From contig JANHCV010000004.1 of the NCBI GenBank assembly GCA_025594325.1, forward strand, positions 434,001-498,000: 64,000 bases of DNA, read 5' to 3'. The position numbers and the translations under genes are program-made. Below are positions 15,122-54,120 of this stretch, one piece after another (position 1 is the first letter of the stretch; the number at the start of each line of letters is the position of its first letter). Below the pieces are notes generated by a model. It had not been told where the DNA came from. It did not search any database and was given only the letters and a program-made list of their open reading frames with translations. This stretch comes from Blastocladiella emersonii ATCC 22665 (taxonomy: Eukaryota > Fungi > Blastocladiomycota).

Positions 15122-18100
15122 ATGTCGCACCCGCTGATCCCGCCGCTGCGGCGGTACCAGACCGTCGCGCGCATGCCCGCTGCGGCTGCCGACTCGGAGC
15201 CATCCTCGCCCGCATCCGACGACGTCCGCCTGCGCCACCTCTCGGCCCCGACCAGTGCTGCACTCGACGGCGTGCACTCGCCGCTGCTGCTCCGCCGGTC
15301 TCACGATGCACCCGCTGCTGCGACCGCCACATCGCCGTCGACGGCGCGCTTCACGGGCTCGTCGGCCGACTGGGACGGCGTCACCGTCACCGGCTCCACG
15401 CTCGGCTCGCCTGCAGCCGCCACGGGCTCGCACTCAGTCGCCATCCCACCGCCGATCGCCGAGCACTCTCTCGACCACGACGCCGAGCACGTCGACGTCG
15501 GCCTCGACGCGGCGTTCGCCGTGCCGCACCGCTCGCAGCGCAAGTACTCGCTCGCGCGCCTGCTCGACCGCGTCCACGAGCGCGTTTTCGGCGCCCGCCC
15601 GCGCTACCAGTCCTACAACGTGGCCCGCTACGCCTACGAGGAGGCCCGCCGCGCCGCCCGCCTTCGTGACGCGGCGACAACGGGCGACCGTGGTGGCGGT
15701 TCGCACCGCGGGTGGTGGAAGGAGCGCCTCCGCGACCACGCCGTGCCGAGCGAGACGGTCGCCGCCCTCTTTGCCAGCGCGCGCTTCCGCGTCGCCGTCG
15801 TGACCGCCGCCTTCCTCGTCGACCTGTGCCTCGTGTGCCTCTACGTCGTCGAGATGATCTACGTCGAGTCGGTTTTGGGGAGCGACGCCCGCACCCGCGC
15901 ATTCAACGACCTCGACCTCGAGCCCGTCTGGCTGTGGACGCCGCGGCCCGTCTCCGTCTACTGGGCCGCTCTTGGTACGCATTCTCACTCGCCCACTACT
16001 CGTGACGACCGAGCACTGACGACCACCCCCAAAAGCGCTCGAGATGTTCAACCTCGGCTACGCCGTCGTCACCTTCCTCGTGTCCATGAGCATCCACGCG
16101 CTCTCGGCGCAGGGCTACTCGCCGCTCGACCTCGTCACGTCGTTCCCCTTCTTTGTCTCGCTGTTTTTGCGAGAAGGCCGCTTCCTCTACATCCCGTACT
16201 TCCTCCGGTCGATCCGCCTCATCCCGCGCATGCGCCGCCTCATCTTCATTCGCGACGAGGTCGCCGGCGGGTCCGCCGTCGCCGTGTCGGTCCCCGCCCA
16301 CACGCACCAGACCCAGCTCACGCTGCTGCTCGTCCGCCTCGCCAACATCGTCTTCGTCACCACCTGCGCCGTGCACTACACGGAGCTCGTGTTTGGCGCG
16401 ACCCCGATCAGCCTGTTCGAGGCCCTGTACATGACGGTGGTCACGATCACCACGGTCGGGTACGGCGACGTGACCGTCAAGAACGCCGCCGGCCGCGTTG
16501 TCATCATCTTTGCCATCCTGCTCTCGTTTGTCACGATCCCGGCCATTGCGTCGTCGTTCATGGACAAGGTGCGCGCGTACCGCGAGGGCGGCGGGTCGTA
16601 CTCGTCTTCGTCCGCCATACCGCACGTCGTCGTGGTCGGCAACGTGTCGAGCGCGAGCGTGTTCATGTCGCTGCTGCACGCCTTTTTCCACTCGGAGAAC
16701 GCCATCCCGCTGCGCGTCGTCATGCTGACGCGGCACGCGCCGTCGGCCGAGGTGCGCGCGCTCATGGGCTCGCCCGCCTTCCGCGGCCGCGTCTTCTACC
16801 TCGTCGGGTCGGCCCTCGACCCGGTCCACCTGCAGCGCGCGCGCGTCCGCGACGCCCAGGCCGTCTTCTTCCTGGCCGACACGGGCTCGTCGGCGACCGG
16901 CGGGTACCACGACACGCACGTCGAGGGCGCCGAGACCGAGGACGAGCGCAACGTGGTCCGCGTGTGGTCGGTCGCCCGGTACGCGCCGCGCGTCGACCTG
17001 TACGTGTACGTGCAGCGGCCCGAGTACGAGCGGTACCACGCGGCGCGCGCCAACGAGGTCGTGTGCGTGCAGGACCTCAAGCAGGCGCTGCTCGCCTCGA
17101 ACCTCGTCTCGCGCGGCGTCGCCACGCTGTTCACCAACCTCATCAACAACGCGACGCCGCTGCAGGACTACTCGCGGCCGTGGCTGGTCCAGTACGGCGA
17201 CGGGCTCGGCCAGGAGGTGTACAAGCTCGGCGTGCCTGCACCCCTCGTCGGGATGCGGTTCCACCGCGCTGCCGCGTATCTTTTCGCCGAGTTCCAGGTC
17301 ACGGCGATTGCACTCCGCGCGCCGCTTCGGGATGGTGCGGGCAAGGTGCGCGACGGACACGTCCTGCTCAACCCGGCCGCCGACTGTTCATTGTTTGGGG
17401 ATGACGAGCTCGTGTGCATTGCGCAGTCGCCGCGCGAGATTGCGCTCGTCGAGTCGCTCGACCACGCCCAGTTTGCCGCCTCGAAAGCGCAGTACCCGTC
17501 GCTCTTTTCGGAAATCAAGGACGAGCGCTCCATCACGCCCATCAGCCTGCGCACCAACTCGGCCATGACTGGCGGCGGTCTCCCCGGGTCGCAGCGCGTC
17601 GACTACCGCCACACGATCCCGGCGACGGCCGAGTCGTTTGTGATCGGGCAGCCGCCGTCGCCGTTCACGACCGACCCCAACAAGATCCCCGACTGCCACC
17701 TCGACCCGCGCCCGCCGCGCCGCATCGAGGACGTGACCATCACCTCGCTTGCCGAGACGGACCCGCGCGGGAACGGCCACGTCGTGGTCATTGCGCCCGA
17801 CGCGCACCTGTTCCGGTTCCTGTGCACGCTGCGCGCCGCACACATCCCCGCCGCCGACCTGCGCTGGGTCGTCGTCGTTGTGCCCTCGCTCCCCCAACCC
17901 GACGATTTCCGGTTCCTCGCGCCGTTCCCGCGCGTGCTGTACATGCAGGGCAACGCGCGCCGGCGCCGCGACCTGCTGCGCGCCAACATCCCCGCCGCAT
18001 CGCGCATCGTGATCCTCGCGCACCGCGCCAGCGACGACCCGGCGTTCGTCGACCTGCAGGCGATCCTGATCCGGCACCTCGCCATGGCCACGGCGGCCCG

Positions 18101-19151
18101 GTTCGCGCCACCCGCGATGGCGGGCCGCCCGCCCGCGTACACCATGGTCGAGCTGTGCGAGTCGGCCAGCATCAACCTGCTCGCGCCGTCCAACGACCTC
18201 GTCCACCAGCACGCGTCGACGGGTCGGCAGTCTCCGCCTCCATCTCATCCGCCGCGGCTCGAGAAGATGCCGCAGGACTCGCGCGAGACGCTCGTCGTCA
18301 CGAGTCTCGAGAAGAGCGGCGGTAAGGAGGCGGCGGCCATGCAGGTGAACGAGCGCCCGCCGATCCCGACCTCGCTCACGGCCACGCGCCACCAGCGCCG
18401 CCTCGGCCTGTCGCTCGCCGAGAAGCTCAAGCGCAAGCGCGCCAAGCTGCTGCGCCGCGGCGGTAGCGGCTCGAGTCCCGCGGACGACTCGGATAGCGAC
18501 GACGACGACGGTGCGCGGGTCCGTGACGGCGACCGTGCCGCGGCGCGCGAGTTCGGCACCGAGATCGGGTACCCGGTCCCGCCGCCGCGCCTACGCGTCT
18601 TCTACGACCCACACTTCGCGTCGGGCGAGGCCTTTTGCGGCGACCTGCTCAACACGGTCCTGGTGCAGCACCTCATCAACCCGACCATCCTCGACCTCGC
18701 GCGGCTGTTTGCAGGTGTGCGCAACCGCGCTGACCGGCTCGTTTCCCACACGCTGCGCGTGCGGCCGTCGTTCCTGTCGACGGTCGAGCTGCCCGCGGGC
18801 TACGCGGGCCGCACGTACCGCGACCTGTTCATGGACCTCGCCGCGGGCGCGGGCGTCGTGCCGATCGGCCTGTACCGCGCGCCAAGCACCGAGCTCGGCA
18901 ACGCGCACTGGTTCGTGTACACGGCGCCGCACCCGGACGTGGTGCTGCTCGCAACCGACCTCGTGTACGTGCTATCGCAGGCCGACAAGGTGGCGAGCCC
19001 CGAGCCGCAACAGCCGCAGGTGCCGCGCGACGTCGAGCCCGTCTCCGACTACGGCGGGATCACGGACGACGACGAGGAGGCCGAGGAGGAGTTTGACTCG
19101 GCCAAGAGCGAGCAGCCGCGCGACGAGCGCCGCAATGTCTTCTTCCGGTAA
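15122..19151 (+). CDS. Slo/BK-family K+ channel with tandem RCK domains (~1322 aa); exons 15122-15974 and 16036-19151
   Basis: Multiple TM helices, pore filter TITTVGYGD, S4-like YFLRSIRLIPRMRR, RCK motifs (PHVVVVG; YLVGSALDPVHLQRARV; QGNARRRRDLLRANI) and FASGEAF. A 61-nt intron (GTACGC...CTGAC...AAG) joins the two long ORFs in frame. Confidence 0.92.
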
Positions 19152-19153
19152 CG

Positions 19154-21943
19154 GTGTCGCGCAGCAAAAGTCTCTATACACCTAGGTTTTGGTTCTTTTT
19201 GAGCGCTCCTGAGCGAAAGTGTTCCCTATAAACGCTGGCAGTTGCTCATCGACGCGGTCGAGTCTCATCGTTCACATCTGCAAGTGAAATTAGCCGGCAG
19301 TTCGACGTCGCAATTCATCTCATCTGCGTACAGGAAGCGACGGGACGAGTAGGTGCGCTACGCGTCTCGTTGCTCGCCGTACCGTTGGGCGGACTCCAGG
19401 TCAGCCGCTGAGACAAGTCCCGGCGCTCGCGCCTCGCTTCAGGGCGGGCGACGCGGAACGAGTACAGCTTGACCGTGAAGCAACGACACGACCGTTCCCG
19501 CGCACGGAACCGACTTTGACGGCTCACGCGCGGTACAGGACACGTCCGTGGTGCGGCGCCCTGAGACCGTTTACTGCGAGTGCGGACCGAGTCCGTTCCC
19601 CTTACGGCACACATTAAACGACCGCGCACAACGCAGGCCTGAACCAATCAAGAGAGGCCCAGCGCAGTCTGTTCGGCACTGTCGCCGCATCGCCAACTCC
19701 GCGCTGCAAGGTGTGCCTTGCGACGCTGCGTTGCTACGCTGGCGGCGGCGCGAGACCCGGCGCACTCCTGCCGTCGACGACGCCAGCGGCAGAAACGCCC
19801 TCCGTCCGCTCCAGCCACCCTCAAGGTCCGTATGGGATGAAGGAAGGGAGCAGGCATGGCCTGACAACCTCACGAACCCTCCGGAGTCCCGTGGCGACCA
19901 CCGCAGCCCGCACGGACGAGGTCCCGTCGACGTCGTCAAACCGAGCGCCGTGGAAGCGTCCCTGAAGAGGATTCCATTCCATTGCATCGGGTTCCCGTCG
20001 CCGCATGGCATACTGTATTCATTGCGGTACGGCGGTTGGTGAGCGGGGGTCGGCGTCCAAGAGCGGCGGCGCTCAAGAAAGTCAAGAAAGAGGCCCGACC
20101 TCGGCGCCCCCCTCTCCTTCAACGCAACACAACAACCATCACCCTGCCATGGATCTCGCCGACGAACTCACCCACTTTGCGCTCTCGCCTCGCGGCGCCG
20201 CCGTGATCACAACGGCGCTCGCCTCCGTTTTCGCGCTCCTCGTGGCGGCCCCCGCGGCGCCGTTCGAGACGGCCTCGATGCTGACGCTCGCCGAGTACCG
20301 CCCGACGTGCGAGGACAAGGAGGAGGACGAGGTCTCCTCGGAGAAGACGCACCCAGTCATGACGACGGCGGGCGGGTACTGGTTGACGCTGCGCACCGTC
20401 TACTCGCGGCTCGGGTACCGCCGCGGCCTCAACCGCGCGCTGCCCGGGTTCGCCGCCGACGTTGCCACGTCTCTCGCGGCCGAGCTGATCCCCGTCACCG
20501 AGACGATCGCACCGTTCCTCGGGATCGCCGCCGATACCGCCGCCGAGCTCGAGCTCGAGCTCAACACGGTCGCTGGTGCGGCACTCGCGCTCACGACGCG
20601 CTCCGTGCAGGGCGCGATCCACACGTTCGCGTTTGCGCCACTCGTCGTCGCCAACGTCCGCCGCATCGTCGCTGTTCAGCCCAAGGGCCTCTTCGCGACG
20701 GCCCGCGACCACATCCGCGCCGACCGGCCGTACTCGCGCGCGCACGGCGCGATCGCGCTCCCGCTCCTCGCGCGCTTCGTGCTGCCGACGGCGACCAACA
20801 TTGTGCATGCATGCCTGCGGCCGCTTGTGCTTTCGGCCGACCGCCCCGTGGACGCGTGGCAGCTCGCGCGCCTGTTCGGTCTGACGCTCGCCGTCGAGTC
20901 GGCGTCGTGCCTCATCGACCTGCCACTGCAGATGGCCGTCGTGCGGCTCTCGCTCGATCCCGCCGCCGAGTCAGTGGTGCGCACGCGCAAGATCGAGTAC
21001 CCCGAGGACGCGGCCGCGTGTTTGGAAGTTGTGGTCCGCGAGGAGGGCGGGTCGGTCCGCGATGCGCTGTGGCAGCGCCTGATGCGGACCGTGTACCGCA
21101 CGCTCGCCGTCGAGGTCGCGACGTCCGTGGTGCTGGCCGCGATCGAGGTCGTGAGCTTCGAGTGACAGTGAAATTAATGGACAGAGCATGCGTTCAAACA
21201 TTCTCGTGACCCAGTCGTCGCGATTCCGCGGTCGTAGCGGAGGCGGCATCACGCGCGCACAGGTCGGACAGTGTGGTCAAGGCTTCAGAGGCGCCCAACA
21301 GCCTCAACGAGTTGCTTTGTAACACAAGGCATGCGACCGGCTCGATTACCTCGGCCACACGTTCGTGTGCTTGGACAGCGAGAAGGCGACGTTGAGCATG
21401 GGCCGCGCGCTGCAAAGCTCTCGCGCGGACACCTCGCACATAGCGCAGAGCTTGCGCAGCTGACCAGCCCGGGCGTTTTCTTGAGGAGAAATGCGCGATT
21501 TCGATAGAGTGGGTGTTAGTTTTCGCAATACCTCAACAACGAGACAGCCGTCCGTATCCGTCGCCAAGCTCAACCTGCTGCTGAGCAACAGTACTCGGCC
21601 GATTTCGTGTCAACGAGACACGGCCCTCACTCTCACAACGCTTGATGGTTACAAAGTCCTCGCTACATTCGTGGCCTGGACTGGACTGGACTGGTCCTTC
21701 CTTGAAGCGGTCCACGAAGCGTGAAAGCGGTCACGGCGCCCTCGCGTCACGACCCACCTGGCGGAATCGCTCTCTCGCTCTCTATTGGCTTGCTGGTCGA
21801 CACGGAAAACTCTCGACGCCTGGTTCGCGCACGTTGGTGATGCAGCTGGGTGATGCCAACCGGGAGATCTGATCTCGAGCGGGGTGGCGCAACGCGTCGG
21901 GTGCGAGACACACGTGATATTGCGACGCGTCTCGCGTCTCCCG
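19154..21943 (+). repeat. Left arm of a 2,790-bp inverted duplication
   Basis: Reverse complement of 30612-33401. Every paired ORF has an identical translation and mirrored coordinates sum to 52555, so there are no indels. Confidence 0.97.
20149..21165 (+). CDS. Divergent mitochondrial carrier-fold protein (Ugo1/SLC25A46- or MTCH-like), copy 1, 338 aa, intronless
   Basis: Degenerate carrier signatures PFETASML, YWLTLRTVYSRLGYRRGL, DLPLQMAVVRL and YPEDAAACLEVVVREEGG. First ATG is at 20149 and codon usage is GC3-rich. Confidence 0.6.
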   Translation: MDLADELTHFALSPRGAAVITTALASVFALLVAAPAAPFETASMLTLAEYRPTCEDKEEDEVSSEKTHPVMTTAGGYWLTLRTVYSRLGYRRGLNRALPGFAADVATSLAAELIPVTETIAPFLGIAADTAAELELELNTVAGAALALTTRSVQGAIHTFAFAPLVVANVRRIVAVQPKGLFATARDHIRADRPYSRAHGAIALPLLARFVLPTATNIVHACLRPLVLSADRPVDAWQLARLFGLTLAVESASCLIDLPLQMAVVRLSLDPAAESVVRTRKIEYPEDAAACLEVVVREEGGSVRDALWQRLMRTVYRTLAVEVATSVVLAAIEVVSFE

Positions 21944-22779
21944 AACCACCGCCGCCGTTGATGCTCTTGTTCAACCAGTTGAGAGAAAAAGGGCGTGAAA
22001 AGCAGCTGCCGGCGGCGTTCTAAACACCAAAAAAGTGAATGCGCGGTTGTTGGATCCGCAATCTGCACGGCCGTGGCGAGTCTCCTATCACAGCGACTCG
22101 GGCGAGGATCGGAGGCCAGTTGATCCCGTCAGAATCGAACCTCCCGCCGGAGTGCCGTTCATGTCATGTCAGGGCTTCCTCGACCGCTTGAGTGGCATCC
22201 ACTTCGAGGACACTCGCTCGACCTCGGTCAAGGACGCATTCCCGCCGGCCTCCGGCGACACGTATCAATCAGGGCAGGCACGCCTTGTTCGACGCGGTAA
22301 GGGAGGGCAAGATACAAGCTGAATGAGAAATCACGCCTGAATGGAGTGAGCTGCGTGGGAGATCATGGCCGCGAAAGGTGTGGTAGGCACGACGGATCTA
22401 TTTGAATGCTCGCAGCTGCAGCGCTTAACGGTCAGTGACCACTCGGGTCATAACATTAGCAACGTAGATTTGAACTCGTCCCCAAGTTGTACTCCCTGCC
22501 GCGGACCATAGCCAATGCTGCGACATGCCGCGCACGCAGGCACGAGCACGAGCGCAGATGGCGTTGCCACCCATCGGCCACCCACCGCCGCGCAAGTCCG
22601 CACATCAAAGCCGAAAAACTCGTCAGTGATGGGCGACACGAGCGAAGAGAAGGGCACCTAGACGTGGGCAGTGGCCCAGCAACGTCGTAGAATGGATATA
22701 ACTGTTATCTTCCTCGTCCAAATCGGTCGTTTGTGCGATAAACTAGCAGGTGACGGTCGGCGACCGGCCGCGGCAGTGC

Positions 22780-22872
22780 AATCAGGAATCAAAGGTTGAA
22801 ATCAACGAAGGCGAGAGACCCGCCGGGTCCTCTGGTTCATCTGAAACACGGATATGAATTGAAGTCATCAGG
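22780..22872 (-). ncRNA. snR18: U18/snR18-like box C/D snoRNA
   Basis: Box C TGATGA (22870-22865); guide TCCGTGTTT (22852-22844), complementary to the conserved LSU rRNA segment UUGAAACACGGA; D' CAGA; C' TTGATT (22805-22800); box D CTGA (22785-22782). This is the same element order as recalled U18 sequences. Confidence 0.75.
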
Positions 22873-23055
22873 TACGCCGCAGCGCGGTCGAGCCCAGAAA
22901 GTAGCAGGTGAAGAAATGCGGGTGTGCTGCCTCAGTTGGTAGTGCATGTTTGTTTGTAATCAAAGTATTCAGTGATCTTGGTGAAACAGTATAATCAGCG
23001 GCCAGCAGGACATAAACCGATTAGCAATGTAGGGTTACAAGGGAAAGGGAAGAAA

Positions 23056-23617
23056 GTTCGCTCAGACATCCAAGGAAGGTCACGATGTGCCATCAGCGAG
23101 CCGGTCGCAGCCTCCCCACGAGCAGCGCCAGTCAACCTTCCCCCACCTCGACCCGAACACACCTTGCCCGACCCAAGCGTTCCTGTTTCTCCCAGCGCTT
23201 TCGCCCACAACGACCCCAGAGACGCGGACGAGACTGACTTCACAAACGGCAGCACGACCAGGACCGGACCCCGTGAAGGGAACAGTACTTGAGACCGATC
23301 GCGCTGTACGCTATGAACATCAGGCCACCACACGCCGACAAGGCCGAAGGGAACGCCGGGCAGGAACGAGTAGGGCGAACAAGGGGATGGAGAGGGGATG
23401 AGGGCATGGTCGAGAGGTACCAGTGTGGACGGCAGGCACTCCTGCCACACGACGCATGTTCGGCAGAATGGGTTTAGCGTACTGGTGCGTGTGGGTGCCG
23501 CTGCCGATCCGAGACCGTCACGGCAGGGCGCGGAGAGCCCGCCTGGAGGCCGGGACACAACAGAGGACTCTACGGTGGAAACTGCGAAGTTGATATGGAA
23601 ACTTCATCAGCGCGAAC
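23056..23617 (-). ncRNA. snR128: U14/snR128 box C/D snoRNA, greatly expanded (562 nt)
   Basis: Terminal stem GTTCGC/GCGAAC; box C TGATGA (23609-23604); domain A TTCGCAGTTTCCACCGTAG (23588-23570); Y-domain-like AGTACGCTAAACCCAT (23483-23468); domain B ACCTTCCTTGGATGT (23080-23066), complementary to 18S ACAUCCAAGGAAGG; box D CTGA (23065-23062). Confidence 0.9.
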
Positions 23618-23828
23618 GGGTGGGCGTCGCCTCCTCGAGCAAGAGAGGGTAGGGAAGGGAGAGGAGGGGTGGGAGTGGTCGTCGAGGCGCGGTTGTCGAG
23701 TTGTCGATGGCGAGGGCGAGGCGAGCGTGCTGAGAGACGACGGGCAGAATGCAGCAACGGTGGTGAGGGTGGAGTAGGCTGCATGGAGCAGCGTGCCGAG
23801 CAAGAGATGGGAGTGGGCCGAGTGATCG

Positions 23829-23835
23829 TTTTATG
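23829..23835 (-). promoter_or_regulatory. TATA-like element (CATAAAA) of the putative snoRNA host transcript
   Basis: AT-rich box about 210 nt upstream of U14 box C and just downstream of the RanBPM 3' end. Confidence 0.35.
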
Positions 23836-24062
23836 GCGGCGGCCGAGCGCACTCATCGACCGCGAAGTGGAACGTGTTTGGGCCGTGTCAAGTGACCGCA
23901 GCTGACCCGTCGCGAGGTGGATTTTCCTTGAGCTTCGCTCACTTTCACCTCACCACTTCGCATCGCAGCTGAGCCACCACCTCCACCGACGACCACCTCG
24001 AAAGAAGGAAACTGGGGTGATATAGTTACTCTCGCACGCACAAAACAAACTGCTTTCCGCCG

Positions 24063-25964
24063 TTACAGCCCGCCAAACACGCGGGCCGCGACATTGACGA
24101 GGGGCGCGTCCGCGATCCCGCGGGCCGCGAGGACGGCCGCGGCGGCGCGTGTCTGGCACGCGACGGCCTCGAGCGCGGGACGGGCGGGGCGGCCGAGGGC
24201 GCCGACCTGGATGGCGCCGTTGACGCGTTCGGCGAGGAGCGCGCGCTGGGCGGGGTCGAGGAGCGGGGCGACGACGGGGACGGTGCGCGGGTCGGCGTAC
24301 GCGACGAGCGAGAAGACGGCGAGCAGGCGCGGCTGGACGAGTTCGGCGGGGAGCGCGGTCGGCGAGGTGGTGTCGTGGCCGTACGGCGCGAGGGTGCGGC
24401 GGCCGTAGTCGAGGGCGGCGAGGAGCGGGGCCGGTGGTGCGCCCGTGGCGGAGGCGGCGTCGCGCTCGGCGAGCGACGCGGCGACGAGCTCGACAAACTT
24501 TTGGCACTGCAGGGCGAAGCGGGTTTCCGGGTGGCGGTCGAGGAAGGCCGGGTACGCGGCGTCGATGGCGGCGAGCGCGCGGTCCATGTCGCCGTCGAGG
24601 ATGGCCTCGCGGATCGCGGCGCGCTGCTCCATTTCGCGCAGCTGCTCGCGCACGTCGGCCGCGTCCGATGCCGCCGCCGCAGCGGACGCGCCGTCCACGT
24701 CCATGGCGTCGCCGCCGTGGCTCGCACCAGCAGCGGAAGATGGAGATTCAGGGGCCGAGGCGGACGAGGCGGCAATCTTCTGCCGCTGGCGCAGGAGGGC
24801 GGCGGCCGTCTTCTTGTACCCGTGGTGGACGAGGTAGCCGAGGACGAGGTCGGTGAGCTGGCGGACCGAGGGGTCGGGGACGGCGGGGTTGGGGCGCACG
24901 ATCTTGTCCCATGCGGCGGCGCGCAGGTCGGCGGCGTAGGCGGCAATGTCGAACTTGAAGGGAGCATGCCCAAAGTTGGCGGCGACGACCTCGCCCGGGG
25001 TGCGCATGCCGACGGCCGGGTAGAGGGGCTTGGAGATGGGGGCCGAGTTGCCCGAGGCGGGGACGGGGGTGGTCGGGAAGGGGAGGTTGGTGAAGGCGGT
25101 GCCGAGGTTGACGCCGTTCTTGGTGAAGAAGGCGGAGCGCGCCGCAAAGTTGATACCGCAACCGATCACGTCGCCGGTGGTGAAGGTCGGGCCGTAGGCC
25201 TTGCCCGAGCCCGAGGACTGGAAGATGTTGCCGTCGTCACCGTGGTAGCCCCACGAGTGCTGCTCCCAGCCGGGCAGGCGGTTGAGGGCGACGCCCTGGG
25301 CGCAGAAGCCGACGCTGATGTACCCCTCGCGGCCCTTGGAGACGATCTGGACCTCGTAGTAGTAGATGCCGGTGGCCATGGGGATCGGGTAGTTTGCGCG
25401 GACGGCGGCGGCGTCCGTGTCGCTGCGGCCGGGCCCCGTGTAGTCGACGCGCTGGTGGGCGTCCTTGAGCTCGAGCAGGCCGCACTTGTCGCGCTGGTTC
25501 CACGCGCTCGGCAGCTGGATGTGCAGGCCGTCGGCGGCGGGCAGCGCGGCGCCCATGACGGGGTTGTAGGTGGGCGCGCCGAACGCGGCGCTCGCGGGGC
25601 TGAGCGGGCCGGGTGCCGCGGCGGAGAGCGGGCTCGCGAGGGCGGAAACGGCGGCGGCAGTCGCGCTCAGCGTCATGGGGCTCGTCGAGGTGGCGGGCGA
25701 GACGCCGGCGGCGAAGGCGGCGGCCGAGGTGGCGGGGTCGGCGAGCTCGAGGCGCGGGGCAATGGCGAGGGTGCGCAGGTAGGCGGGCAGGTTGCGGTTG
25801 ATGCCCGCGTCGCCCACGACACCGTCCTCGTCGGCGCCGGCCGCACTGGCAGTGCCGGGCGCGCCGGCAAGCGCAGCGGGGCCCGTGGCGAGGTGCAGGG
25901 CGGCGGCGAACGGCTGCTTGACGGGAGCGGCGAGCGGGGGCGCGCTCGCGAACTGGCCGTCCAT
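24063..25964 (-). CDS. RANBP9: RanBPM/RanBP9-10 (Gid1-like) with SPRY-LisH-CTLH-CRA domains, 633 aa, intronless
   Basis: SPRY (AAVRANYPIP...YYYEVQI...GFC...LPGWEQHSWGYHGDDG...YGPTFTTGDVIGCG), LisH (LVLGYLVHHGYKKTA), CTLH (RAAIREAILDGDMDRAL...FALQCQKFVEL) and CRA (FSLVAYADP). Confidence 0.95.
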   Translation of the reverse strand: MDGQFASAPPLAAPVKQPFAAALHLATGPAALAGAPGTASAAGADEDGVVGDAGINRNLPAYLRTLAIAPRLELADPATSAAAFAAGVSPATSTSPMTLSATAAAVSALASPLSAAAPGPLSPASAAFGAPTYNPVMGAALPAADGLHIQLPSAWNQRDKCGLLELKDAHQRVDYTGPGRSDTDAAAVRANYPIPMATGIYYYEVQIVSKGREGYISVGFCAQGVALNRLPGWEQHSWGYHGDDGNIFQSSGSGKAYGPTFTTGDVIGCGINFAARSAFFTKNGVNLGTAFTNLPFPTTPVPASGNSAPISKPLYPAVGMRTPGEVVAANFGHAPFKFDIAAYAADLRAAAWDKIVRPNPAVPDPSVRQLTDLVLGYLVHHGYKKTAAALLRQRQKIAASSASAPESPSSAAGASHGGDAMDVDGASAAAAASDAADVREQLREMEQRAAIREAILDGDMDRALAAIDAAYPAFLDRHPETRFALQCQKFVELVAASLAERDAASATGAPPAPLLAALDYGRRTLAPYGHDTTSPTALPAELVQPRLLAVFSLVAYADPRTVPVVAPLLDPAQRALLAERVNGAIQVGALGRPARPALEAVACQTRAAAAVLAARGIADAPLVNVAARVFGGL

Positions 25965-26569
25965 GGTTGCTTCTGGTTGGATGTGTTACGTTGCTTGCTT
26001 CGTGGTCGAGTGTTGGGGAGAGGAAAGGAGAGGAGAGGGAGCGCGGACCGAACGCGTCGGGCGGCGGGGCGGGCCGCGGCTCCCACGCGTCCGCCCGCCG
26101 CTCTCGCCCACGCGCGACCACGCGACCCGACGCGCAACTTGTCCCCTCCCCTCGCCCCTCGTCTCTCTCCCCTCCCTCTCTCTCGCTGAGATCCGCGACT
26201 CGGTGCACCGCCGCCGCTCCACGCATCGACGACCCTCGCGCACGCGCACCCGCCGCGCCGCGCCGCGCCGATCTCGCCACGCTGGCGCCCGGCCGCCGAC
26301 CCCCACCTGCCGCTCGCGGCCCGACCCCGCCGCCCACCAAGCGCCCCGCCGCCGACGATCGCGACGAGGAGCCCGCTGCTGCCGCGACCTCCGCGACCGC
26401 GCCCACCGAGCCCGCGCGCAAGCGCCGCCGCAAGGAGAAGAAGCTGCGCCAGAAGCAGTGGCGCGACGACCAGGCCGCCCGCCGCTCTGCTGCTGCCGTC
26501 GAGCCCGCCTCGGCCGATCCACCTACCGCTGCTCCACCCGCACCCGCCGTACCCGCACCCGCGCCCAAG

Positions 26570-28519
26570 ATGAGCTTCGCGTACCGCCGCTTCGGGTCCG
26601 CGCGCCGCGCGCCCGTCGAGGAGTCGACGCCCGAGGAGACGCACCAGCGCCACGAGCAGCTCGCCCGCATCCTGACCGGCGAGCCCGACGCCGCCGCCGC
26701 CGTGCTCGGCCCGTCGTCCGCACCGGCGCTCGGCGGGAACCTCACCGAGGCCGAGCTCGCCGCCGACTTTGACCCCGCCCTGTGCATCGAGTGCCAGGAC
26801 CACCCCGCCGACCTCGTCTGCCACGGCTGCGCCGACGACAAGTACTGCTCCGTCTGCTTCCACGCACAGCACCGCAAGTCGCCCGGCCGCCTCGCCCACA
26901 AGTCGACCCCGATCCACGGCGGTGCTGCGGCCGAGAACGGCGACGCTGCTGCCGCGTCCGCTGCCGCCGCCAACGGCGACGCGATGGCGACCGACTCGCC
27001 CATGGACACGTCGTCGGCCGAGAGCCCGACCGCTGCCCCCGCTCCCGCCGCCGCGCCCGCCGCGCCCGTCGTCGCCAGCCCCTCGGCCACCCACAACGCC
27101 GCCGAGTTCGGCGCCTGGCTCACGGAGCGGTGCCAGTGGATCCCCGTGCGCATGTCGCTGCCCGAGCGCAAGCTGCTGCGCCTGCTCGACGCCGCCCTGC
27201 GCGTCTCCGAGTACACGGACCGCGTCGACATCCTCGCCGCCGGCTCGCGCACCCAGCGCATGGTCACCCAGATCCGCGAGGTGTGTCAGACCCTCGCCGG
27301 CCTCGTCGTCGCCGCCGACTACCAGCTCGGCCAGGAGCTCTTTGCCGACCGCGACTTTGCCGCCAACGCCGCCTGGTACGCCCACGTCTTCGAGCTCGGC
27401 CGCCGCCACAAGATCCTCAACCCCGACAAGATGCGCGCCACCTACGGCAAGCTCATCGTGCTGCTCCAGGACGCGGCCCTCCCCGAGGTCCAGCGCCTGC
27501 TCGGCTTCGACGTGATCGCCCCCGTCAAGACCGTCCACCGCGTCCTGTCGCAGCACGGCGCCCTCCACCTGCTCATGGACCCCATGGTCCTCGACGCCAC
27601 CGCCGAGATCATCTCCGACGGGAAACCGCGCCGCGTCATCGACGCCGAGATCCGCCGCAAGGAGCACGCCGTCGACACCCTCGCCCGCAAGTACGCCACC
27701 CCGTCGCTCACCGCCGACGACCTGCGCTCCGTCCTTTACTCCATCGGCGACCACCACCATTACCTCCATTTTCATCGGGACCCGTGCGACCACCTCCTCA
27801 AGCACCTCAACACCTTCTTTGGCGGCGAGGAGCCCGTCGGGGGCAGTCTGGCGATCCGCGCCGGCAGTTTTGGGGCCCGATTGACCCATTCACACGCCAA
27901 GCAATACGCGTACGTTTCGCAATCACTTGCCTTGTGGCGTGAAATCGAAAACGACATGTTCATGCTCTGGTCGCTCGCCGAGGCCGACCTGCTGTCGAGC
28001 GACGGGTACCGGCTGCGCAACACGGGCCAGGGCCTCAACCGCGTGCAGGCGTGCCCGAACGTCGGCCGCGCCATGCACGCGATCCTGCGTCGCGCGCAGA
28101 CGCGGCTCGGGTCGTGGGTCGGGTCCAGCGTCATCCACCTCGGCGACGAGAACGTGCCCAACGCGCTCATGTTCATCGACAAGTACACGCAGGTGCCGCG
28201 CATCCTGCACCCGGTCCTCAAGGCCGTCGACCGCCTCGAGTCCGAGATCCACGCGCACCCGGCGCTGCGCGAGTTCCTCCGCGCCCAGTACGGCGCCGAC
28301 GACACGGTGCGCCGCGCCCAGTGCGCCATCCTCGAGGACTTCTTCAAGCACGCGTTTGACGGGTCCGGCGCCGACAACTTCAACTCGGCCGGCAGCTGCA
28401 TCGACGGCCGCCTCACCAGCGCGTGGAACTGGTGCTCCGCCATCGAGAAGAAACCCTACTTCCCCATCTTCCTCCTCACGGGCTTCGTCGGGTTCGACGG
28501 CGAGTCGTTTGACGTGTGA
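26570..28519 (+). CDS. B-box zinc finger + UPF0652/DUF2009-like protein; possible non-AUG N-terminal extension from 26282
   Basis: B-box CIECQD...CHGC...YCSVCFHAQH...H, followed by a conserved-looking region (IPVRMSLPERK.LRLLDAALRVSEYTDRVD; ELGRRHKILNPDKMRATYGKL; AFDGSGADNF..AGSCIDGRLTSAWNWCS..EKKPY..IFLLTGFVGFDG). Confidence 0.85.
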   Translation: MSFAYRRFGSARRAPVEESTPEETHQRHEQLARILTGEPDAAAAVLGPSSAPALGGNLTEAELAADFDPALCIECQDHPADLVCHGCADDKYCSVCFHAQHRKSPGRLAHKSTPIHGGAAAENGDAAAASAAAANGDAMATDSPMDTSSAESPTAAPAPAAAPAAPVVASPSATHNAAEFGAWLTERCQWIPVRMSLPERKLLRLLDAALRVSEYTDRVDILAAGSRTQRMVTQIREVCQTLAGLVVAADYQLGQELFADRDFAANAAWYAHVFELGRRHKILNPDKMRATYGKLIVLLQDAALPEVQRLLGFDVIAPVKTVHRVLSQHGALHLLMDPMVLDATAEIISDGKPRRVIDAEIRRKEHAVDTLARKYATPSLTADDLRSVLYSIGDHHHYLHFHRDPCDHLLKHLNTFFGGEEPVGGSLAIRAGSFGARLTHSHAKQYAYVSQSLALWREIENDMFMLWSLAEADLLSSDGYRLRNTGQGLNRVQACPNVGRAMHAILRRAQTRLGSWVGSSVIHLGDENVPNALMFIDKYTQVPRILHPVLKAVDRLESEIHAHPALREFLRAQYGADDTVRRAQCAILEDFFKHAFDGSGADNFNSAGSCIDGRLTSAWNWCSAIEKKPYFPIFLLTGFVGFDGESFDV

Positions 28520-28665
28520 TCGATGCCCCTCCTCCTCCCCTCCCTCCCTCCCTCCCTCCCTCTTGCTCCAGCTGACGCGAGTCGACGACCGACCGATTGA
28601 ATGAACGAATGAATACATAGCACCACACACTTTCTCTCTGCACCTCGACCACGACTCTCTCTCGC

Positions 28666-29292
28666 TCAACTCCGTGCCGCCAGCGGCGGGAGAGACATGC
28701 ACGGGATATCGCTGAGCCGGCTCGACACGGGGAGCCCGGGCAGCAGCGCGCGCCACCCGCTGACCTTGGCCGCGCCCGTGATGGTGACGGGCAGCCGCTT
28801 GACGACCATGCCGCTGCCGCACAGCTTCTCGAGCAGCGCCAGGTTGTCGGACGCGATGGGCAGCACGAACCGCGTCGACTTGAGCGGCGCCAGCACGCTG
28901 CCCGCGGGCACCGTCACCCGCACGAGTGCGCGGCCCTCGGACTGTACCTCGACGTCGAATGCGCGCGTCTCGAGCTTCGAACCGAGTGTGTTCCACACAG
29001 CGATGCTCGCTTCCATGTCCGGGAGCAGGGTGACGGTGGATGTGCCGTTCGCCGCGCGCTGGCGGATCTCGATAAAGTCGACCATGATCGCGCTCTGCTT
29101 CCACACGACGTAGAGCGCGGCAATGGACGCGAAGATGAGCAGGCCAGCGACTAGCCCGACGCCGAACCGGCGGCGGCGGGACTTGATAGCGGCTGCGGCC
29201 TGCGCTGCGCTCGTGGACGCGGCCGCGTCTTTCTCGACGTCGGCGTCTTCCTTGCGCGAGTGCGGGAACCGTATGATGGGCGCGACTTTCAT
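28666..29292 (-). CDS. Single-pass membrane protein with LEA_2/WHy-like beta domain (~208 aa)
   Basis: Basic RRRR followed by one TM helix (FGVGLVAGLLIFASIAALYVVW), then a beta-strand pattern (IAVWNTLG...FDVEVQSEG..LVRVTVPAG.VLAP...RFVLPI). Codon usage is GC3-rich. Confidence 0.5.
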   Translation of the reverse strand: MKVAPIIRFPHSRKEDADVEKDAAASTSAAQAAAAIKSRRRRFGVGLVAGLLIFASIAALYVVWKQSAIMVDFIEIRQRAANGTSTVTLLPDMEASIAVWNTLGSKLETRAFDVEVQSEGRALVRVTVPAGSVLAPLKSTRFVLPIASDNLALLEKLCGSGMVVKRLPVTITGAAKVSGWRALLPGLPVSSRLSDIPCMSLPPLAARS

Positions 29293-30611
29293 GCTGCTTA
29301 CATGGGTGCTGCTGATACTGTAGTGCGTTCGTTCTCCTCGAACCAGCGAGGGATGGATAGTGCTGGCAAGACGGGGGAGAAGCAGCGCCACGAGGGCTTG
29401 TAGACGAAGCGGAGCGGAAGCTCCGTGGCTTGGGCTGCGGGCACTGAATTTGATCGAAACCATGATCCGAGGCTGGCGGAGCGACGCGCCGGTGTGGCGC
29501 AACGCGTGCCATGCACTCCTCGACGCGTCGGACTTGCTGCGTTGTTGCCGCCCTCGACTCGCAACGCCTCGAGGGCCTTCCTCTGCTTCGTGATCCCGGC
29601 GCCGCTCGAGCGTTTCCGCGCGTCAGCGAAGGTCGAGCGAGATCTTGACCTACGAGCCAATGATCACCTCCTCGCTCCCGTCGCCAAGCACTGACAATTC
29701 GGCGCGAGCGCTGTAACTCTGTATCCGCGTCGAATCCGAGGCCGTCATCGACACGTGGTGCGACCCGCCGAGGCCCTCCTAGTCGGGCGCGTTTAGCGCC
29801 GCGGCAGCGTTCGCTTTGGCGGGAGGACGGTGGCCGTGGGTGGCATCGGCTAGGGAGCGGTGGTGCTCGAAATCTTCCACCCGAGCGGGGCGACGCGGCC
29901 GAAGATGGACCGCGGGACGCCTGTGGCGAACACGCGCGAGAAGCGCCGCGGCTATGGTGCCACGATGGCCGTGGGCTCGATCCTGAGCCTCTGAACTCTG
30001 ACGGCTCGCCGTTCATGATGCGTGGACTCCTCGAAAACGGGTGACGCGGGCGGCGATGCAGAGGCTCTTTGCGGCGCCGCGACCTGGACTGGAACCGCGT
30101 CATACCGATGCTGTGCAGCTATTGCCGTGACGGCGGGCTCACCGGATGCCGTGTCGCTCAGCGTGGACCCGTTCGGCTTGTCCGTGTTGCTGCGCAGTAC
30201 CTGCGACCGAGAATATGTACTCACCCTTGAGTTTGCGTCATGAGCATGTTACAGGTCCCCCGCAGCGTCGAATACGTTTGGCGGCGGAGGCGAAAGACAA
30301 GTGGCCTCGGTTGGGCGACTGCCATCGAGGTGGAAGCGAGTAGAGCGGTCAAGGTCAGTTGCACTGCGGTGACATAAGTGGGGCCCCGGCGTAAGTGTGT
30401 TCGATCCCGGATCATTCGAAAGTCCGAAACCGGGACTGCTGCGATAAAAGACTGAGCTTGACCGTGCGGATTCAGACACCGCGCATTCACTTTTTTTCGC
30501 TGTTGTCGCTGCGAACGGCCGACGGAAAGGCCTATTTTCCCATGAGTATTTGCTAGGAAAAGAGATCGAGCAGCGAGTGGCTGTGGGGGACGCGAACCGG
30601 AAGCGCTCCAG

Positions 30612-33401
30612 CGGGAGACGCGAGACGCGTCGCAATATCACGTGTGTCTCGCACCCGACGCGTTGCGCCACCCCGCTCGAGATCAGATCTCCCGGTTGGC
30701 ATCACCCAGCTGCATCACCAACGTGCGCGAACCAGGCGTCGAGAGTTTTCCGTGTCGACCAGCAAGCCAATAGAGAGCGAGAGAGCGATTCCGCCAGGTG
30801 GGTCGTGACGCGAGGGCGCCGTGACCGCTTTCACGCTTCGTGGACCGCTTCAAGGAAGGACCAGTCCAGTCCAGTCCAGGCCACGAATGTAGCGAGGACT
30901 TTGTAACCATCAAGCGTTGTGAGAGTGAGGGCCGTGTCTCGTTGACACGAAATCGGCCGAGTACTGTTGCTCAGCAGCAGGTTGAGCTTGGCGACGGATA
31001 CGGACGGCTGTCTCGTTGTTGAGGTATTGCGAAAACTAACACCCACTCTATCGAAATCGCGCATTTCTCCTCAAGAAAACGCCCGGGCTGGTCAGCTGCG
31101 CAAGCTCTGCGCTATGTGCGAGGTGTCCGCGCGAGAGCTTTGCAGCGCGCGGCCCATGCTCAACGTCGCCTTCTCGCTGTCCAAGCACACGAACGTGTGG
31201 CCGAGGTAATCGAGCCGGTCGCATGCCTTGTGTTACAAAGCAACTCGTTGAGGCTGTTGGGCGCCTCTGAAGCCTTGACCACACTGTCCGACCTGTGCGC
31301 GCGTGATGCCGCCTCCGCTACGACCGCGGAATCGCGACGACTGGGTCACGAGAATGTTTGAACGCATGCTCTGTCCATTAATTTCACTGTCACTCGAAGC
31401 TCACGACCTCGATCGCGGCCAGCACCACGGACGTCGCGACCTCGACGGCGAGCGTGCGGTACACGGTCCGCATCAGGCGCTGCCACAGCGCATCGCGGAC
31501 CGACCCGCCCTCCTCGCGGACCACAACTTCCAAACACGCGGCCGCGTCCTCGGGGTACTCGATCTTGCGCGTGCGCACCACTGACTCGGCGGCGGGATCG
31601 AGCGAGAGCCGCACGACGGCCATCTGCAGTGGCAGGTCGATGAGGCACGACGCCGACTCGACGGCGAGCGTCAGACCGAACAGGCGCGCGAGCTGCCACG
31701 CGTCCACGGGGCGGTCGGCCGAAAGCACAAGCGGCCGCAGGCATGCATGCACAATGTTGGTCGCCGTCGGCAGCACGAAGCGCGCGAGGAGCGGGAGCGC
31801 GATCGCGCCGTGCGCGCGCGAGTACGGCCGGTCGGCGCGGATGTGGTCGCGGGCCGTCGCGAAGAGGCCCTTGGGCTGAACAGCGACGATGCGGCGGACG
31901 TTGGCGACGACGAGTGGCGCAAACGCGAACGTGTGGATCGCGCCCTGCACGGAGCGCGTCGTGAGCGCGAGTGCCGCACCAGCGACCGTGTTGAGCTCGA
32001 GCTCGAGCTCGGCGGCGGTATCGGCGGCGATCCCGAGGAACGGTGCGATCGTCTCGGTGACGGGGATCAGCTCGGCCGCGAGAGACGTGGCAACGTCGGC
32101 GGCGAACCCGGGCAGCGCGCGGTTGAGGCCGCGGCGGTACCCGAGCCGCGAGTAGACGGTGCGCAGCGTCAACCAGTACCCGCCCGCCGTCGTCATGACT
32201 GGGTGCGTCTTCTCCGAGGAGACCTCGTCCTCCTCCTTGTCCTCGCACGTCGGGCGGTACTCGGCGAGCGTCAGCATCGAGGCCGTCTCGAACGGCGCCG
32301 CGGGGGCCGCCACGAGGAGCGCGAAAACGGAGGCGAGCGCCGTTGTGATCACGGCGGCGCCGCGAGGCGAGAGCGCAAAGTGGGTGAGTTCGTCGGCGAG
32401 ATCCATGGCAGGGTGATGGTTGTTGTGTTGCGTTGAAGGAGAGGGGGGCGCCGAGGTCGGGCCTCTTTCTTGACTTTCTTGAGCGCCGCCGCTCTTGGAC
32501 GCCGACCCCCGCTCACCAACCGCCGTACCGCAATGAATACAGTATGCCATGCGGCGACGGGAACCCGATGCAATGGAATGGAATCCTCTTCAGGGACGCT
32601 TCCACGGCGCTCGGTTTGACGACGTCGACGGGACCTCGTCCGTGCGGGCTGCGGTGGTCGCCACGGGACTCCGGAGGGTTCGTGAGGTTGTCAGGCCATG
32701 CCTGCTCCCTTCCTTCATCCCATACGGACCTTGAGGGTGGCTGGAGCGGACGGAGGGCGTTTCTGCCGCTGGCGTCGTCGACGGCAGGAGTGCGCCGGGT
32801 CTCGCGCCGCCGCCAGCGTAGCAACGCAGCGTCGCAAGGCACACCTTGCAGCGCGGAGTTGGCGATGCGGCGACAGTGCCGAACAGACTGCGCTGGGCCT
32901 CTCTTGATTGGTTCAGGCCTGCGTTGTGCGCGGTCGTTTAATGTGTGCCGTAAGGGGAACGGACTCGGTCCGCACTCGCAGTAAACGGTCTCAGGGCGCC
33001 GCACCACGGACGTGTCCTGTACCGCGCGTGAGCCGTCAAAGTCGGTTCCGTGCGCGGGAACGGTCGTGTCGTTGCTTCACGGTCAAGCTGTACTCGTTCC
33101 GCGTCGCCCGCCCTGAAGCGAGGCGCGAGCGCCGGGACTTGTCTCAGCGGCTGACCTGGAGTCCGCCCAACGGTACGGCGAGCAACGAGACGCGTAGCGC
33201 ACCTACTCGTCCCGTCGCTTCCTGTACGCAGATGAGATGAATTGCGACGTCGAACTGCCGGCTAATTTCACTTGCAGATGTGAACGATGAGACTCGACCG
33301 CGTCGATGAGCAACTGCCAGCGTTTATAGGGAACACTTTCGCTCAGGAGCGCTCAAAAAGAACCAAAACCTAGGTGTATAGAGACTTTTGCTGCGCGACA
33401 C
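30612..33401 (-). repeat. Right arm of the 2,790-bp inverted duplication
   Basis: Mirror of 19154-21943. The match ends at 30612 (vs 21943) and at 33401 (vs 19154). Confidence 0.97.
31390..32406 (-). CDS. Mitochondrial carrier-fold protein, copy 2 (identical to 20149-21165)
   Basis: Translation is identical to copy 1 in the ORF track. Confidence 0.6.
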   Translation of the reverse strand: MDLADELTHFALSPRGAAVITTALASVFALLVAAPAAPFETASMLTLAEYRPTCEDKEEDEVSSEKTHPVMTTAGGYWLTLRTVYSRLGYRRGLNRALPGFAADVATSLAAELIPVTETIAPFLGIAADTAAELELELNTVAGAALALTTRSVQGAIHTFAFAPLVVANVRRIVAVQPKGLFATARDHIRADRPYSRAHGAIALPLLARFVLPTATNIVHACLRPLVLSADRPVDAWQLARLFGLTLAVESASCLIDLPLQMAVVRLSLDPAAESVVRTRKIEYPEDAAACLEVVVREEGGSVRDALWQRLMRTVYRTLAVEVATSVVLAAIEVVSFE

Positions 33402-33973: not shown

Positions 33974-35116
33974 CTACCCTGCACCGCCAATCGTGTCCGG
34001 CACGCCCCTCGCCCTCGCCCACCCGTCGAGCACCTTGACACACGCGTCGACGAGTTTGCGGTACACCTCGGGCCGCTTTTCCGGGTCGAGCGCGGTCTCC
34101 GCGGCCTCAAGCGCGCGCTCGCCCGCGCTCGCCTTCCCCGCCTCGACGTACACCATCATGGGCTCAGCCTCGTCGGCGTGCCAGTCGTCAGGCAAAAACC
34201 GTTTCGGCGGGACGTAGACGGCGGTCTCGGGGTCGCCGCCCATGACGCGCGTCGCGACATTGACGACGTTGACGCCGCGCGCGCGCAGGGCGTCGATGCG
34301 GGCGACGCGCGAGTCGAACGGCTCGACGAGGACCGGGTGCAGGAACTTGAGCCGCGCGTGCCACCGCGTGTCGAGGCCAGCCATCTCCGCCAACCCCGCG
34401 GTGACGCCCATGGCGGCGCGCGTGACCGCCCCCACCACGGCGCGGGACACGAACGCGAGCGGTTTCGCGTCAACGAACTTCCGCCGCGCCGAGCTCGCGC
34501 GCGGCTTGCTCGGGAGCGCGAGCTGGCCCGAGTACGCGAGCAAGGCCGCGTGCGCGGCGGCGCCGTGCAGGCCGCTCGGGTACAGGAAGAAGGGCGCGTT
34601 GAGCGCGAGCACGCCGTCGACGAGCACGCGGTCGGCCCACGCCGCGACACTGGCGTCGCCGCGCCGCGCGTCGCAGTACGCGAAGAAGGTGCGCGCGGCT
34701 TCCGCGGCCACGAGCCCGCCGACGTCGTGCCCGACAAACACGATGCGGAGCGTGCCGGCGGACTCGAGCGCGAGGGAGCGGACGCGCGCGACGACGTGCC
34801 GCGCGGCGTCGGCGATCGAAGAGGTAGTCCAGTCGGCGACGAGGACGCGGTCGTACGACGCGGCGAAGCCGCGCACCGGGTCGAACTGCGTGTCCTCGAG
34901 GGCCTGGGTGAAGGCGGCAAAGGCGGCGCGCGCGGCCGGGTCGAGCGAGCCGACGCACACCATGGAGCACGCGTCGTGCTCGATCGGCAGGTGCGGCAGG
35001 TGCGCAATGTCGGTGGCGAACGACTGGAAGCTCGCGGCGGGCGAGTCGGCGAGGTTGAGCAGCGAGAAGCGCTGGTCGGGCGACACCGGCGTGGTTTGGT
35101 GGTCGTGATCATTCAT
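33974..35116 (-). CDS. Alpha/beta-hydrolase-fold protein (DUF676/PGAP1-like) with Asp at the nucleophile position
   Basis: IVFVGHDVGGLVAAEAA elbow, followed by VDGVLALNAPF and ARLKFLHPVL. First ATG is at 35116; intronless ORF with coding codon bias. Confidence 0.6.
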   Translation of the reverse strand: MNDHDHQTTPVSPDQRFSLLNLADSPAASFQSFATDIAHLPHLPIEHDACSMVCVGSLDPAARAAFAAFTQALEDTQFDPVRGFAASYDRVLVADWTTSSIADAARHVVARVRSLALESAGTLRIVFVGHDVGGLVAAEAARTFFAYCDARRGDASVAAWADRVLVDGVLALNAPFFLYPSGLHGAAAHAALLAYSGQLALPSKPRASSARRKFVDAKPLAFVSRAVVGAVTRAAMGVTAGLAEMAGLDTRWHARLKFLHPVLVEPFDSRVARIDALRARGVNVVNVATRVMGGDPETAVYVPPKRFLPDDWHADEAEPMMVYVEAGKASAGERALEAAETALDPEKRPEVYRKLVDACVKVLDGWARARGVPDTIGGAG

Positions 35117-35365
35117 TCTAGTGTAGTCTGTTGCATCGAGTCGTCTAGTCACCGATCCATGGGTTCATGTAGTGATGGTTCCTGCGAGAGAGGGAGGAGA
35201 TCGGTTGACGAGGAGAGGTCTGCACCCAGCTTGCACCGCAGCACAGCGAACCTGACAGCGAACCGCAGTCCAGAAAGAAGGGAGAAGGCGAACATTCGAG
35301 CAACCGTGTGATACACGTTTATTATTACCTACCCCCCATCCACCGCTGAGCCACCCTCCACTCAC

Positions 35366-52949: not shown

Positions 52950-54120
52950 TTACTGGAACGAGAGCAAATCGCGGGCTCTCAAATGAATGACGAGTCCCAG
53001 CGGCACAGCCTCGCGAACCGGTGCGACCAGCTCGCCGTACTCCATCGTCCGGAACGAGTACAGCTCGAGCTCCTCGAGGGCGGGCGGGATCCGAGCAGCG
53101 AGCGCCTGCAGCCCTGCCTCACCCAGCGGATTGTGCGACAGCACGAGCTTGGTGAGCGTGGGAGGGAGCCGTGGTGCGAGCACGGTCAGCGCCTTGTCAG
53201 CAATCTCGGCCCGGTTGAGGGCGAGCGACTGGAGCGCGGGCGGCATGTGCATTCCCAAGTACGCCGCGCCGATGATCTCGAGGGAGCTCATTGAGAGGTC
53301 GAGAACCCGCAGCGACGCAGGCAGCGCCGCCATGAGATCGGGATGCGAGCTGCTGCTCGAGCTGGCGGTTTCGCTCAGCTCGAGCGTCTCGAGGCCCGCG
53401 GGCATCCGGCACACGAGCGCGCGGACCGCATCGTCGTCCGGGTGGTAGGCGCGGCTGTTATACCTGAGCCGCTTGAGAGTTGGCGGGAGTGCGGCCATGA
53501 CGGGCGCCAGGCTGCTGTTCTTGTAAACCTTGCTAACATCCAGCGCCTCCAGAGCAGGCGGCAGCGACGCAGCGAGCACGAGAATGTCCTCGTCGCCGAG
53601 AGTCATCTCGTGAAGGTCCAACTCGGTGAGAGTGTCAGGAAAGGACCACGCTGGTTGTTTCTCGCCGGGGCCGTCGTCGGACCGATCCTTGTTGAAGTTG
53701 CCGCCAATGTTGAGCGAGCGGAGCGACGGCGGAAAGTGCGGGCCGAGGGCTGCGAGCCCCTCGCTCGAGATTCGGGTACGGAAAAGGCAGAGCGACCGAA
53801 GCGTTGCAGGCAAGAGGCGGACGAGTGCAAGCGCGCGGTCGTCGCCAAGAAGGCAGGAAGACATGTCGAGCGAGGCCAGCGTTGAAGTAAGTCGCGAGAA
53901 GAGGCAATGGACGGACGTCGCGCACAGGTCGGTCCGAACGGCGAGCGACTGGAGATTGGCCGGCCACTGTATCGGGTCGAGCACCTCGGATTCGTGAGGC
54001 GATTCGAGCCAAAGGTGAGCGAGCTTGATCTCGGTCACCAAGTCGGAAATGCTCTACGGCGTGGACCAAGATCTGCTCAAGGATCTCGGGGACGTGGTGT
54101 TTGCCAATTCGAGTGCTCAT
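52950..54120 (-). pseudogene. RNI-like LRR gene 1: F-box-like start fused out of frame to the LRR C-half (internal deletion)
   Basis: MSTRIGKHHVPEILEQILVHAVE switches frame near 54060 to SISDLVTEIKLAHLWL...WPANLQSL... with a 363-codon LRR ORF (LxxLxLxxNxI/L repeats). The central part present in copy 3 is absent. Confidence 0.65.

Follow-up and report, generated by a model that had tools for sequence, protein, structure and literature searches.

How can two gene-bearing arms stay letter-identical in inverted orientation when homologous sequence next to both of them has drifted to about 63% identity? The question is raised by a locus of the zoosporic fungus Blastocladiella emersonii ATCC 22665, in which two 2,790-bp inverted repeats enclose 8.7 kb of unique DNA. 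The window analyzed here is a stretch of 64,000 nucleotides, positions 434,001 to 498,000 of contig JANHCV010000004.1 (C16 in our genome-wide coordinates), and positions without a contig prefix are those of the window. We favor the reading, at a probability of roughly 0.7, that the locus is an old inverted segmental duplication with a spacer and with its outer 2,790 bp homogenized by gene conversion between the arms. The paper on the genome contains neither the word 'inverted' nor 'palindrom' (PMC9730499).

Identical arms around a unique spacer

The left arm (19154..21943, plus strand) and the right arm (30612..33401, minus strand) are exact reverse complements, 2,790 nt long, with 0 mismatches and 0 indels in both a repeat search and a direct string comparison. 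An earlier annotation made from the letters of the window alone (hereafter the sequence-only reading) had described them as apparently identical inverted repeats of this length, and this is now confirmed from end to end. The spacer between them (21944..30611) measures 8,668 nt, has no long internal repeats and holds four or five genes; in the 15-38 kb portion of the window the arm pair is the sole long repeat. With arms more than 99% identical around a unique middle, the structure is a palindrome. A whole-genome search returned just two copies of the arm sequence in the 32.6-Mb, 21-contig genome, C16:453154-455943 and C16:464612-467401, which puts the locus 453-467 kb into a 2.5-Mb contig and away from the contig ends.

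Both outer edges are abrupt. The left flank ends in ...CCGGTAACG and the right flank starts with TTCATCGCG; no direct repeat is shared between them and no target-site duplication (TSD) was found at the outer arm ends, in agreement with the flanks quoted by the sequence-only reading. Flank alignment detected no collinear homology beyond the outer edges. The arms carry no terminal repeats, their ends are unlike each other, and a Pfam scan of the arm open reading frames (ORFs), with one coding region per arm, showed neither a transposase nor another mobility gene. We considered a terminal inverted repeat (TIR) transposon or a composite DNA transposon and rejected both, as a TSD and a mobility gene are both lacking and the genomic copy number is only two. 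The judgment of the sequence-only reading that a TIR transposon is unlikely is upheld; the Pfam scan gave no domain of any kind in the arms.

Diverged homology next to the arms

Homology continues inside the edge of identity, a feature absent from the sequence-only reading. Positions 22029..22230 align in inverted order with 30302..30496 over 210 columns, of which 63% are identical, and the two copies are mirror-placed, 86-287 and 115-309 nt from the two spacer ends. The local alignment scores 56, compared with 14.2 +/- 2.1 for shuffled sequences and a maximum of 32 for genomic 500-mer controls. The best-conserved 15-nt word, AAGTGAATGCGCGGT, occurs at these two sites only in 32.6 Mb, and a DNA search with the whole element found no further copy elsewhere in the genome.

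The inner extension thus carries ~0.5 substitutions per site beside arms in which none of the 2,790 bp differs (upper 95% bound, about 0.1%), and these two values make one shared age impossible without homogenization. Judged from this single genome, the identity of the arms appears to exceed what the age of the duplication would allow, as conversion predicts. The sequence-only reading had taken perfect identity to mean either recent origin or homogenization; that was right, and the adjoining ~63% homology favors the homogenizing of an old duplication.

As we picture it, an inverted segmental duplication would have copied at least about 3.1 kb, comprising one complete species-specific gene and flanking non-coding DNA. 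Gene conversion between the arms, a recombinational copy-correction, would then keep the outer 2,790 bp letter-identical, or would recently have made them so, and the innermost ~300 bp, left out of this correction, would have diverged until about 63% identity remained. Such drift would be permitted by the inner-edge stretch that cannot be aligned, serving as a heterology barrier. Gene conversion is the most likely homogenizing process; in the palindromes of sex chromosomes it is established (PMC3723533, PMC8600007). The first duplication could have come about by a staggered-break inversion (PMC1885836) or by inverted insertion of a copy. The effect would be an orphan gene present in two identical doses.

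The diverged pair has features of its own. On the strand facing the arms, both copies show words that resemble boxes A and B in class II tRNA genes (GAGCGGTCAAGG, GTTCGATyC) and a run of 6-7 T at the end. The pair may be a relic or a novel polymerase III unit. As a tRNA it was rejected by ARAGORN, with introns allowed too, positives appearing only at a junk-level threshold, and a search for known RNAs in Rfam was negative. Two-sequence consensus folds were uninformative.

Other palindromes and a dispersed motif

Three more palindromes of the same genome were found by way of a motif of ~55 nt that is present in the arms, and were then verified by arm comparison. Two of them are nearly perfect: C18:52991-59087 versus 90196-84100 at 99.9% identity, and C16:288255-295000 versus 323987-317226, 130 kb from the window, at 99.7%. 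The arms C2:1150524-1152511 and 1196227-1194245 are 95.9% identical with adjoining blocks at 74-85%, the whole structure spanning C2:1148392-1198404. All differences in the C18 pair and in the C16 pair at 288-324 kb lie near the outer edge and the 4.9-5.8 kb further in are perfect. Confinement of differences to the edge is the pattern expected of conversion.

The motif itself is ~55-60 nt long, with the core CACGTGATATTGCGACGCGTCTC, and occupies 21881..21943 on the plus strand, ending at the inner identity edge; its mirror lies at 30612-30674 on the minus strand. The motif core CACGTGATATCGCGACGCGTCTC is almost invariant, with an E-box and two ACGCGT sites. Matches of 85-89% to the last ~60 nt of the arm are present at three other loci, and the motif occurs at C5:471303-471366, C21:1481253-1481313, C3:744227-744279 and some 10 further sites. 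Allowing up to 3 mismatches, the core has 19 sites in the genome, and the reversed control has 0. An alignment of 15 distinct loci covers about 25-55 nt, and their flanks are unrelated. The motif mostly lies in long non-coding stretches, and about 4 of these 15 loci lie in palindromes.

Identity ends 17 nt past the motif core at our locus and homology decays about 40 nt past it in the C2 pair. That the motif is a general boundary of identity finds no support in the palindromes of C18 and C16:290 kb: there it sits inside perfect sequence and the differences are 0.4-0.9 kb away, near the outer edge. Nor did it fit the promoter of one gene family, as no neighboring gene is consistent, or a known RNA, as no Rfam family lies nearby. 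We therefore treat the motif as an unexplained lead and not as a finding. A wider idea would be that B. emersonii has an unusually active, possibly site-influenced process that forms palindromes and copy-corrects them, keeping gene-bearing palindromes letter-identical, with the motif perhaps marking where tracts start or stop. We put this forward as speculation with little probability behind it.

Alternative explanations

Several observations weigh against a homogenized old duplication. The 85 nt (left) and 115 nt (right) directly adjoining the arms are essentially unalignable, and the diverged ~200-bp pair could be a conserved functional element instead of neutral remains. Copy number and interior orientation rest on one HiFi assembly plus internal evidence, and Illumina polishing could in principle have wiped out a few true arm-arm differences. 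Moreover, the outer edge of identity is knife-sharp and lacks the diverged fringe of this genome's other palindromes, which fits a recent copying event outward from an older short repeat too. The short old inverted repeat, represented by the diverged pair of ~200-300 bp, would have come first, and one recent repair or replication event, for instance template switching or break-induced replication begun at or close to this seed, would later have copied 2.79 kb outward until a non-homologous join closed it; the arms would then be new and not repeatedly corrected. Apart from the missing fringe, the absence of homology past an edge that falls 2 nt after a stop codon and the zero differences across 2,790 bp agree with this account. 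Homologous copying could, however, not be primed from a seed so diverged (63% identity, with indels), the sequence beside the arms is unalignable, and two events are invoked where one process is enough, so that we regard young arms on an old seed as unlikely. Somewhat less likely still is a single, very recent staggered-break inversion of the 8.7-kb interior that duplicated the stretch between staggered nicks at one breakpoint. Its architecture fits, both ends bearing inverted duplicates and neither a TSD nor a transposon being present, as in the published model (PMC1885836), but a single recent event leaves unexplained both the ~63% homology beside the two arms and the contrast of 100% with 63%, and the other palindromes point to a general process of duplication plus conversion. 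An old inversion of this kind merges with the homogenized duplication as its first step.

A further possibility is that the assembler or the polishing step produced the structure from a single true arm, by making a second copy or by joining flanks. A repeat that had been collapsed or duplicated would show perfect identity. The assembly was, however, built from 605,547 PacBio HiFi reads of mean length 10.5 kb (about 186x) with the La Jolla Assembler, yielding 21 contigs after purging, and was then polished with Illumina reads (PMC9730499). Reads of this mean length bridge one 2.79-kb repeat with unique anchors on either side, the structure is placed 450 kb within a contig of 2.5 Mb, and a heterozygous inversion would, as we reason, not give the assembly-graph path L-A-I-A'-R. 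In addition, two distinct, diverged paralogous sequences adjoin the arm copies, and no assembler invents such sequences. On this internal evidence we take the inverted duplication to be real and both inner junctions to be biological; an artefact would be quite improbable. Any perfect inverted repeat of 2.8 kb can recombine, and crossing-over between the arms could passively invert the 8.7-kb interior. To this extent the flip-flop segment proposed by the sequence-only reading survives; its regulated form does not. A programmed switch, in which a regulated inversion of the interior changes expression in the way that methylotrophic yeasts switch mating type, would share with Ogataea and Komagataella the perfect 2.8-kb inverted repeats around a gene block (PMC6692504). 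Yet the contents are a snoRNA-like cluster, a CTLH-complex subunit, a DUF2009 E2-like gene, a LEA_2-like gene and an orphan, with no mating-type gene, and Pfam scans of interior and arms found no mating-type-like, recombinase or regulator genes. The scans also showed no orientation-sensitive gene content at the interior edges; there is no silencing-type edge, and the locus is mid-contig and not at a contig end. After inversion each interior end would keep the same 2.8-kb neighborhood, as identical arms buffer both ends, and the short junctions read alike in either orientation. Because the contents are housekeeping-like and both orientations share their local context, we do not take the interior for a programmed switch and give that idea next to no credence.

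Relation to described palindromes and invertible loci

Taken by itself, the locus is a usual case of a structure already known, the small gene-bearing palindrome. The palindromes of mammalian sex chromosomes (human Y P1-P8, and X) undergo gene conversion from arm to arm and have arms of >99.9% identity (PMC3723533, PMC8600007, PMC8327919). They resemble the B. emersonii locus in having inverted arms, a unique spacer, genes in the arms and arm identity far above that of the adjoining homology, and rare inversions of the spacer are expected in both. They differ in that the length of our arms is lower by a factor of 3 to 500 (2.8 kb versus 9 kb-1.45 Mb) and is exceeded by that of the spacer. Furthermore, we are dealing with a zoosporic fungus and a chromosome not known as a sex chromosome, and conversion is inferred from one genome.

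The flip-flop loci of Ogataea polymorpha and Komagataella phaffii likewise consist of inverted repeats of about 2-3 kb around a block in a fungus, and homologous recombination between the repeats inverts that block (PMC6692504). In contrast, our locus, known from one assembly, has no mating-type (MAT) genes, no silencing centromere or telomere by one arm and no orientation-dependent gene context. The breakpoints of staggered-break inversions in Drosophila share the inverted duplicates at the segment ends and the lack of transposon features and of a TSD (PMC1885836). Those duplications usually date to the inversion and then diverge, whereas here the arms are identical and the adjoining homology is ~37% diverged. 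There is a likeness within the genome itself too: the C18, C16 and C2 palindromes also have identical or near-identical arms, arm genes restricted to the species, and diverged edges. Compared with them, our locus stands out by a spacer that, at 8.7 kb and with four or five genes, is relatively long and rich in genes, by its sharp outer edge 2 nt past the neighbor's stop codon and by an inner edge at the dispersed 55-nt motif.

The value of the locus is that of a clean data point, with a sharp step from 100% to 63% identity and a gene-rich spacer longer than the arms. It adds to a pattern in which chromosomes of a zoosporic fungus would carry homogenized, gene-bearing palindromes around species-only genes. 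If conversion and occasional flipping hold true, B. emersonii would offer a compact system for palindrome dynamics beyond sex chromosomes. For annotation, duplicated identical genes are to be expected here, and the orientation of the 8.7-kb block may be polymorphic.

Genes of the arms

Each arm is laid out as about 850-990 bp of non-coding DNA, one coding region (20146-21165 in the left arm) and about 780 bp of non-coding DNA. The left copy of the gene (20146..21165, plus strand), recognized by its strong codon periodicity, encodes a 338-aa orphan protein, and its open frame extends back to an ATG at 20005. The right copy (31390..32409, minus strand) is the same gene, at 100% identity over residues 1-339 (C16:465393-466409, minus). 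GC content by codon position is 0.71/0.50/0.91, resembling that of neighboring genes, and the protein is identical to the database protein P0001 (annotated, 338 aa). Coding signature and annotation together suggest that the arms hold functional gene copies.

The arm protein has no Pfam domain, even at E = 10, and a word-indexed protein search returned only the protein itself. A HMMER scan of 1.84 billion representative proteins recovered itself and one paralog from the same species, KAI9148593.1, at 48% identity. By these searches, we class the gene as a species-only orphan. The paralog maps to contig 9 as two direct copies 50.8 kb apart (C9:47905-50337 and C9:98674-101106), which differ by 3 mismatches across at least 2,433 bp (99.88% identity). 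Taken together, the contig 9 pair and the arm pair place all four family members in young or homogenized duplications. Between the contig 9 paralogs and the arms the coding region alone is shared, with no synteny, and for that reason the paralogs were of no use for reading the ancestral gene order. A single-sequence AlphaFold model of the arm protein is all-helical and of low confidence (pLDDT 38), and is thus unusable. The ESM Atlas gave an unconfirmed hint of a mitochondrial carrier with a score of 0.90, the recognition being under the reliability bar.

Genes of the spacer and flanks

The genes of the spacer are housekeeping-like. At 22806-23617, on the minus strand, lies a cluster resembling small nucleolar RNAs (snoRNAs), in which all Rfam matches are below the gathering score. 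It consists of a SNORD18-like match at 22806-22876 (20.5 bits), a SNORD33-like match at 22927-23005 (32.5 bits) and a SNORD14-like match in two pieces ~400 nt apart, 23062-23114 and 23518-23615 (21 and 16 bits). These C/D snoRNA matches are compatible with U18 and an expanded U14. The cluster is followed by a RanBPM-type SPRY/LisH/CTLH gene (24063-25964, minus strand) and a B-box + DUF2009 gene (within 25967-28519, plus strand), both with clear Pfam matches. A weak LEA_2-like gene occupies 28666-29502 on the minus strand, with E = 0.009 and under the Pfam cut-off. Of the interior genes named by the sequence-only reading, RanBPM and the B-box gene are therefore firmly placed, and the LEA2-like gene and U14/U18 have weak or sub-threshold matches.

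Upstream of the left arm is the gene of a BK/Slo-type K+ channel (16044..19151, plus strand; Slo-like_RCK 1e-35, BK_channel_a, Ion_trans_2). The outer left edge of identity lies 2 nt past its stop codon TAA (19149-19151). With the stop this close to the arm, the entire 3' untranslated region of the channel gene would lie in the left arm, and a second copy of it would stand at the opposite end of the structure. On the right, a lipase/hydrolase-like ORF (33974..35152, minus strand) with weak Pfam hints and a GC content at third codon positions (GC3) of 0.92 ends 573 bp outside the right arm.

Further repeats of the window

The window contains a second, small inverted repeat at 1295-1541 and 1973-2219, in which arms of 247 nt, 99% identical, enclose a 431-nt spacer. 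Outward from it a weaker complementarity extends to about 1270 and 2240. A 131-nt segment is present in three direct copies (53703-53833, 55306-55436 and 58712-58842) of 69-72% identity and is probably part of a tandem gene family.

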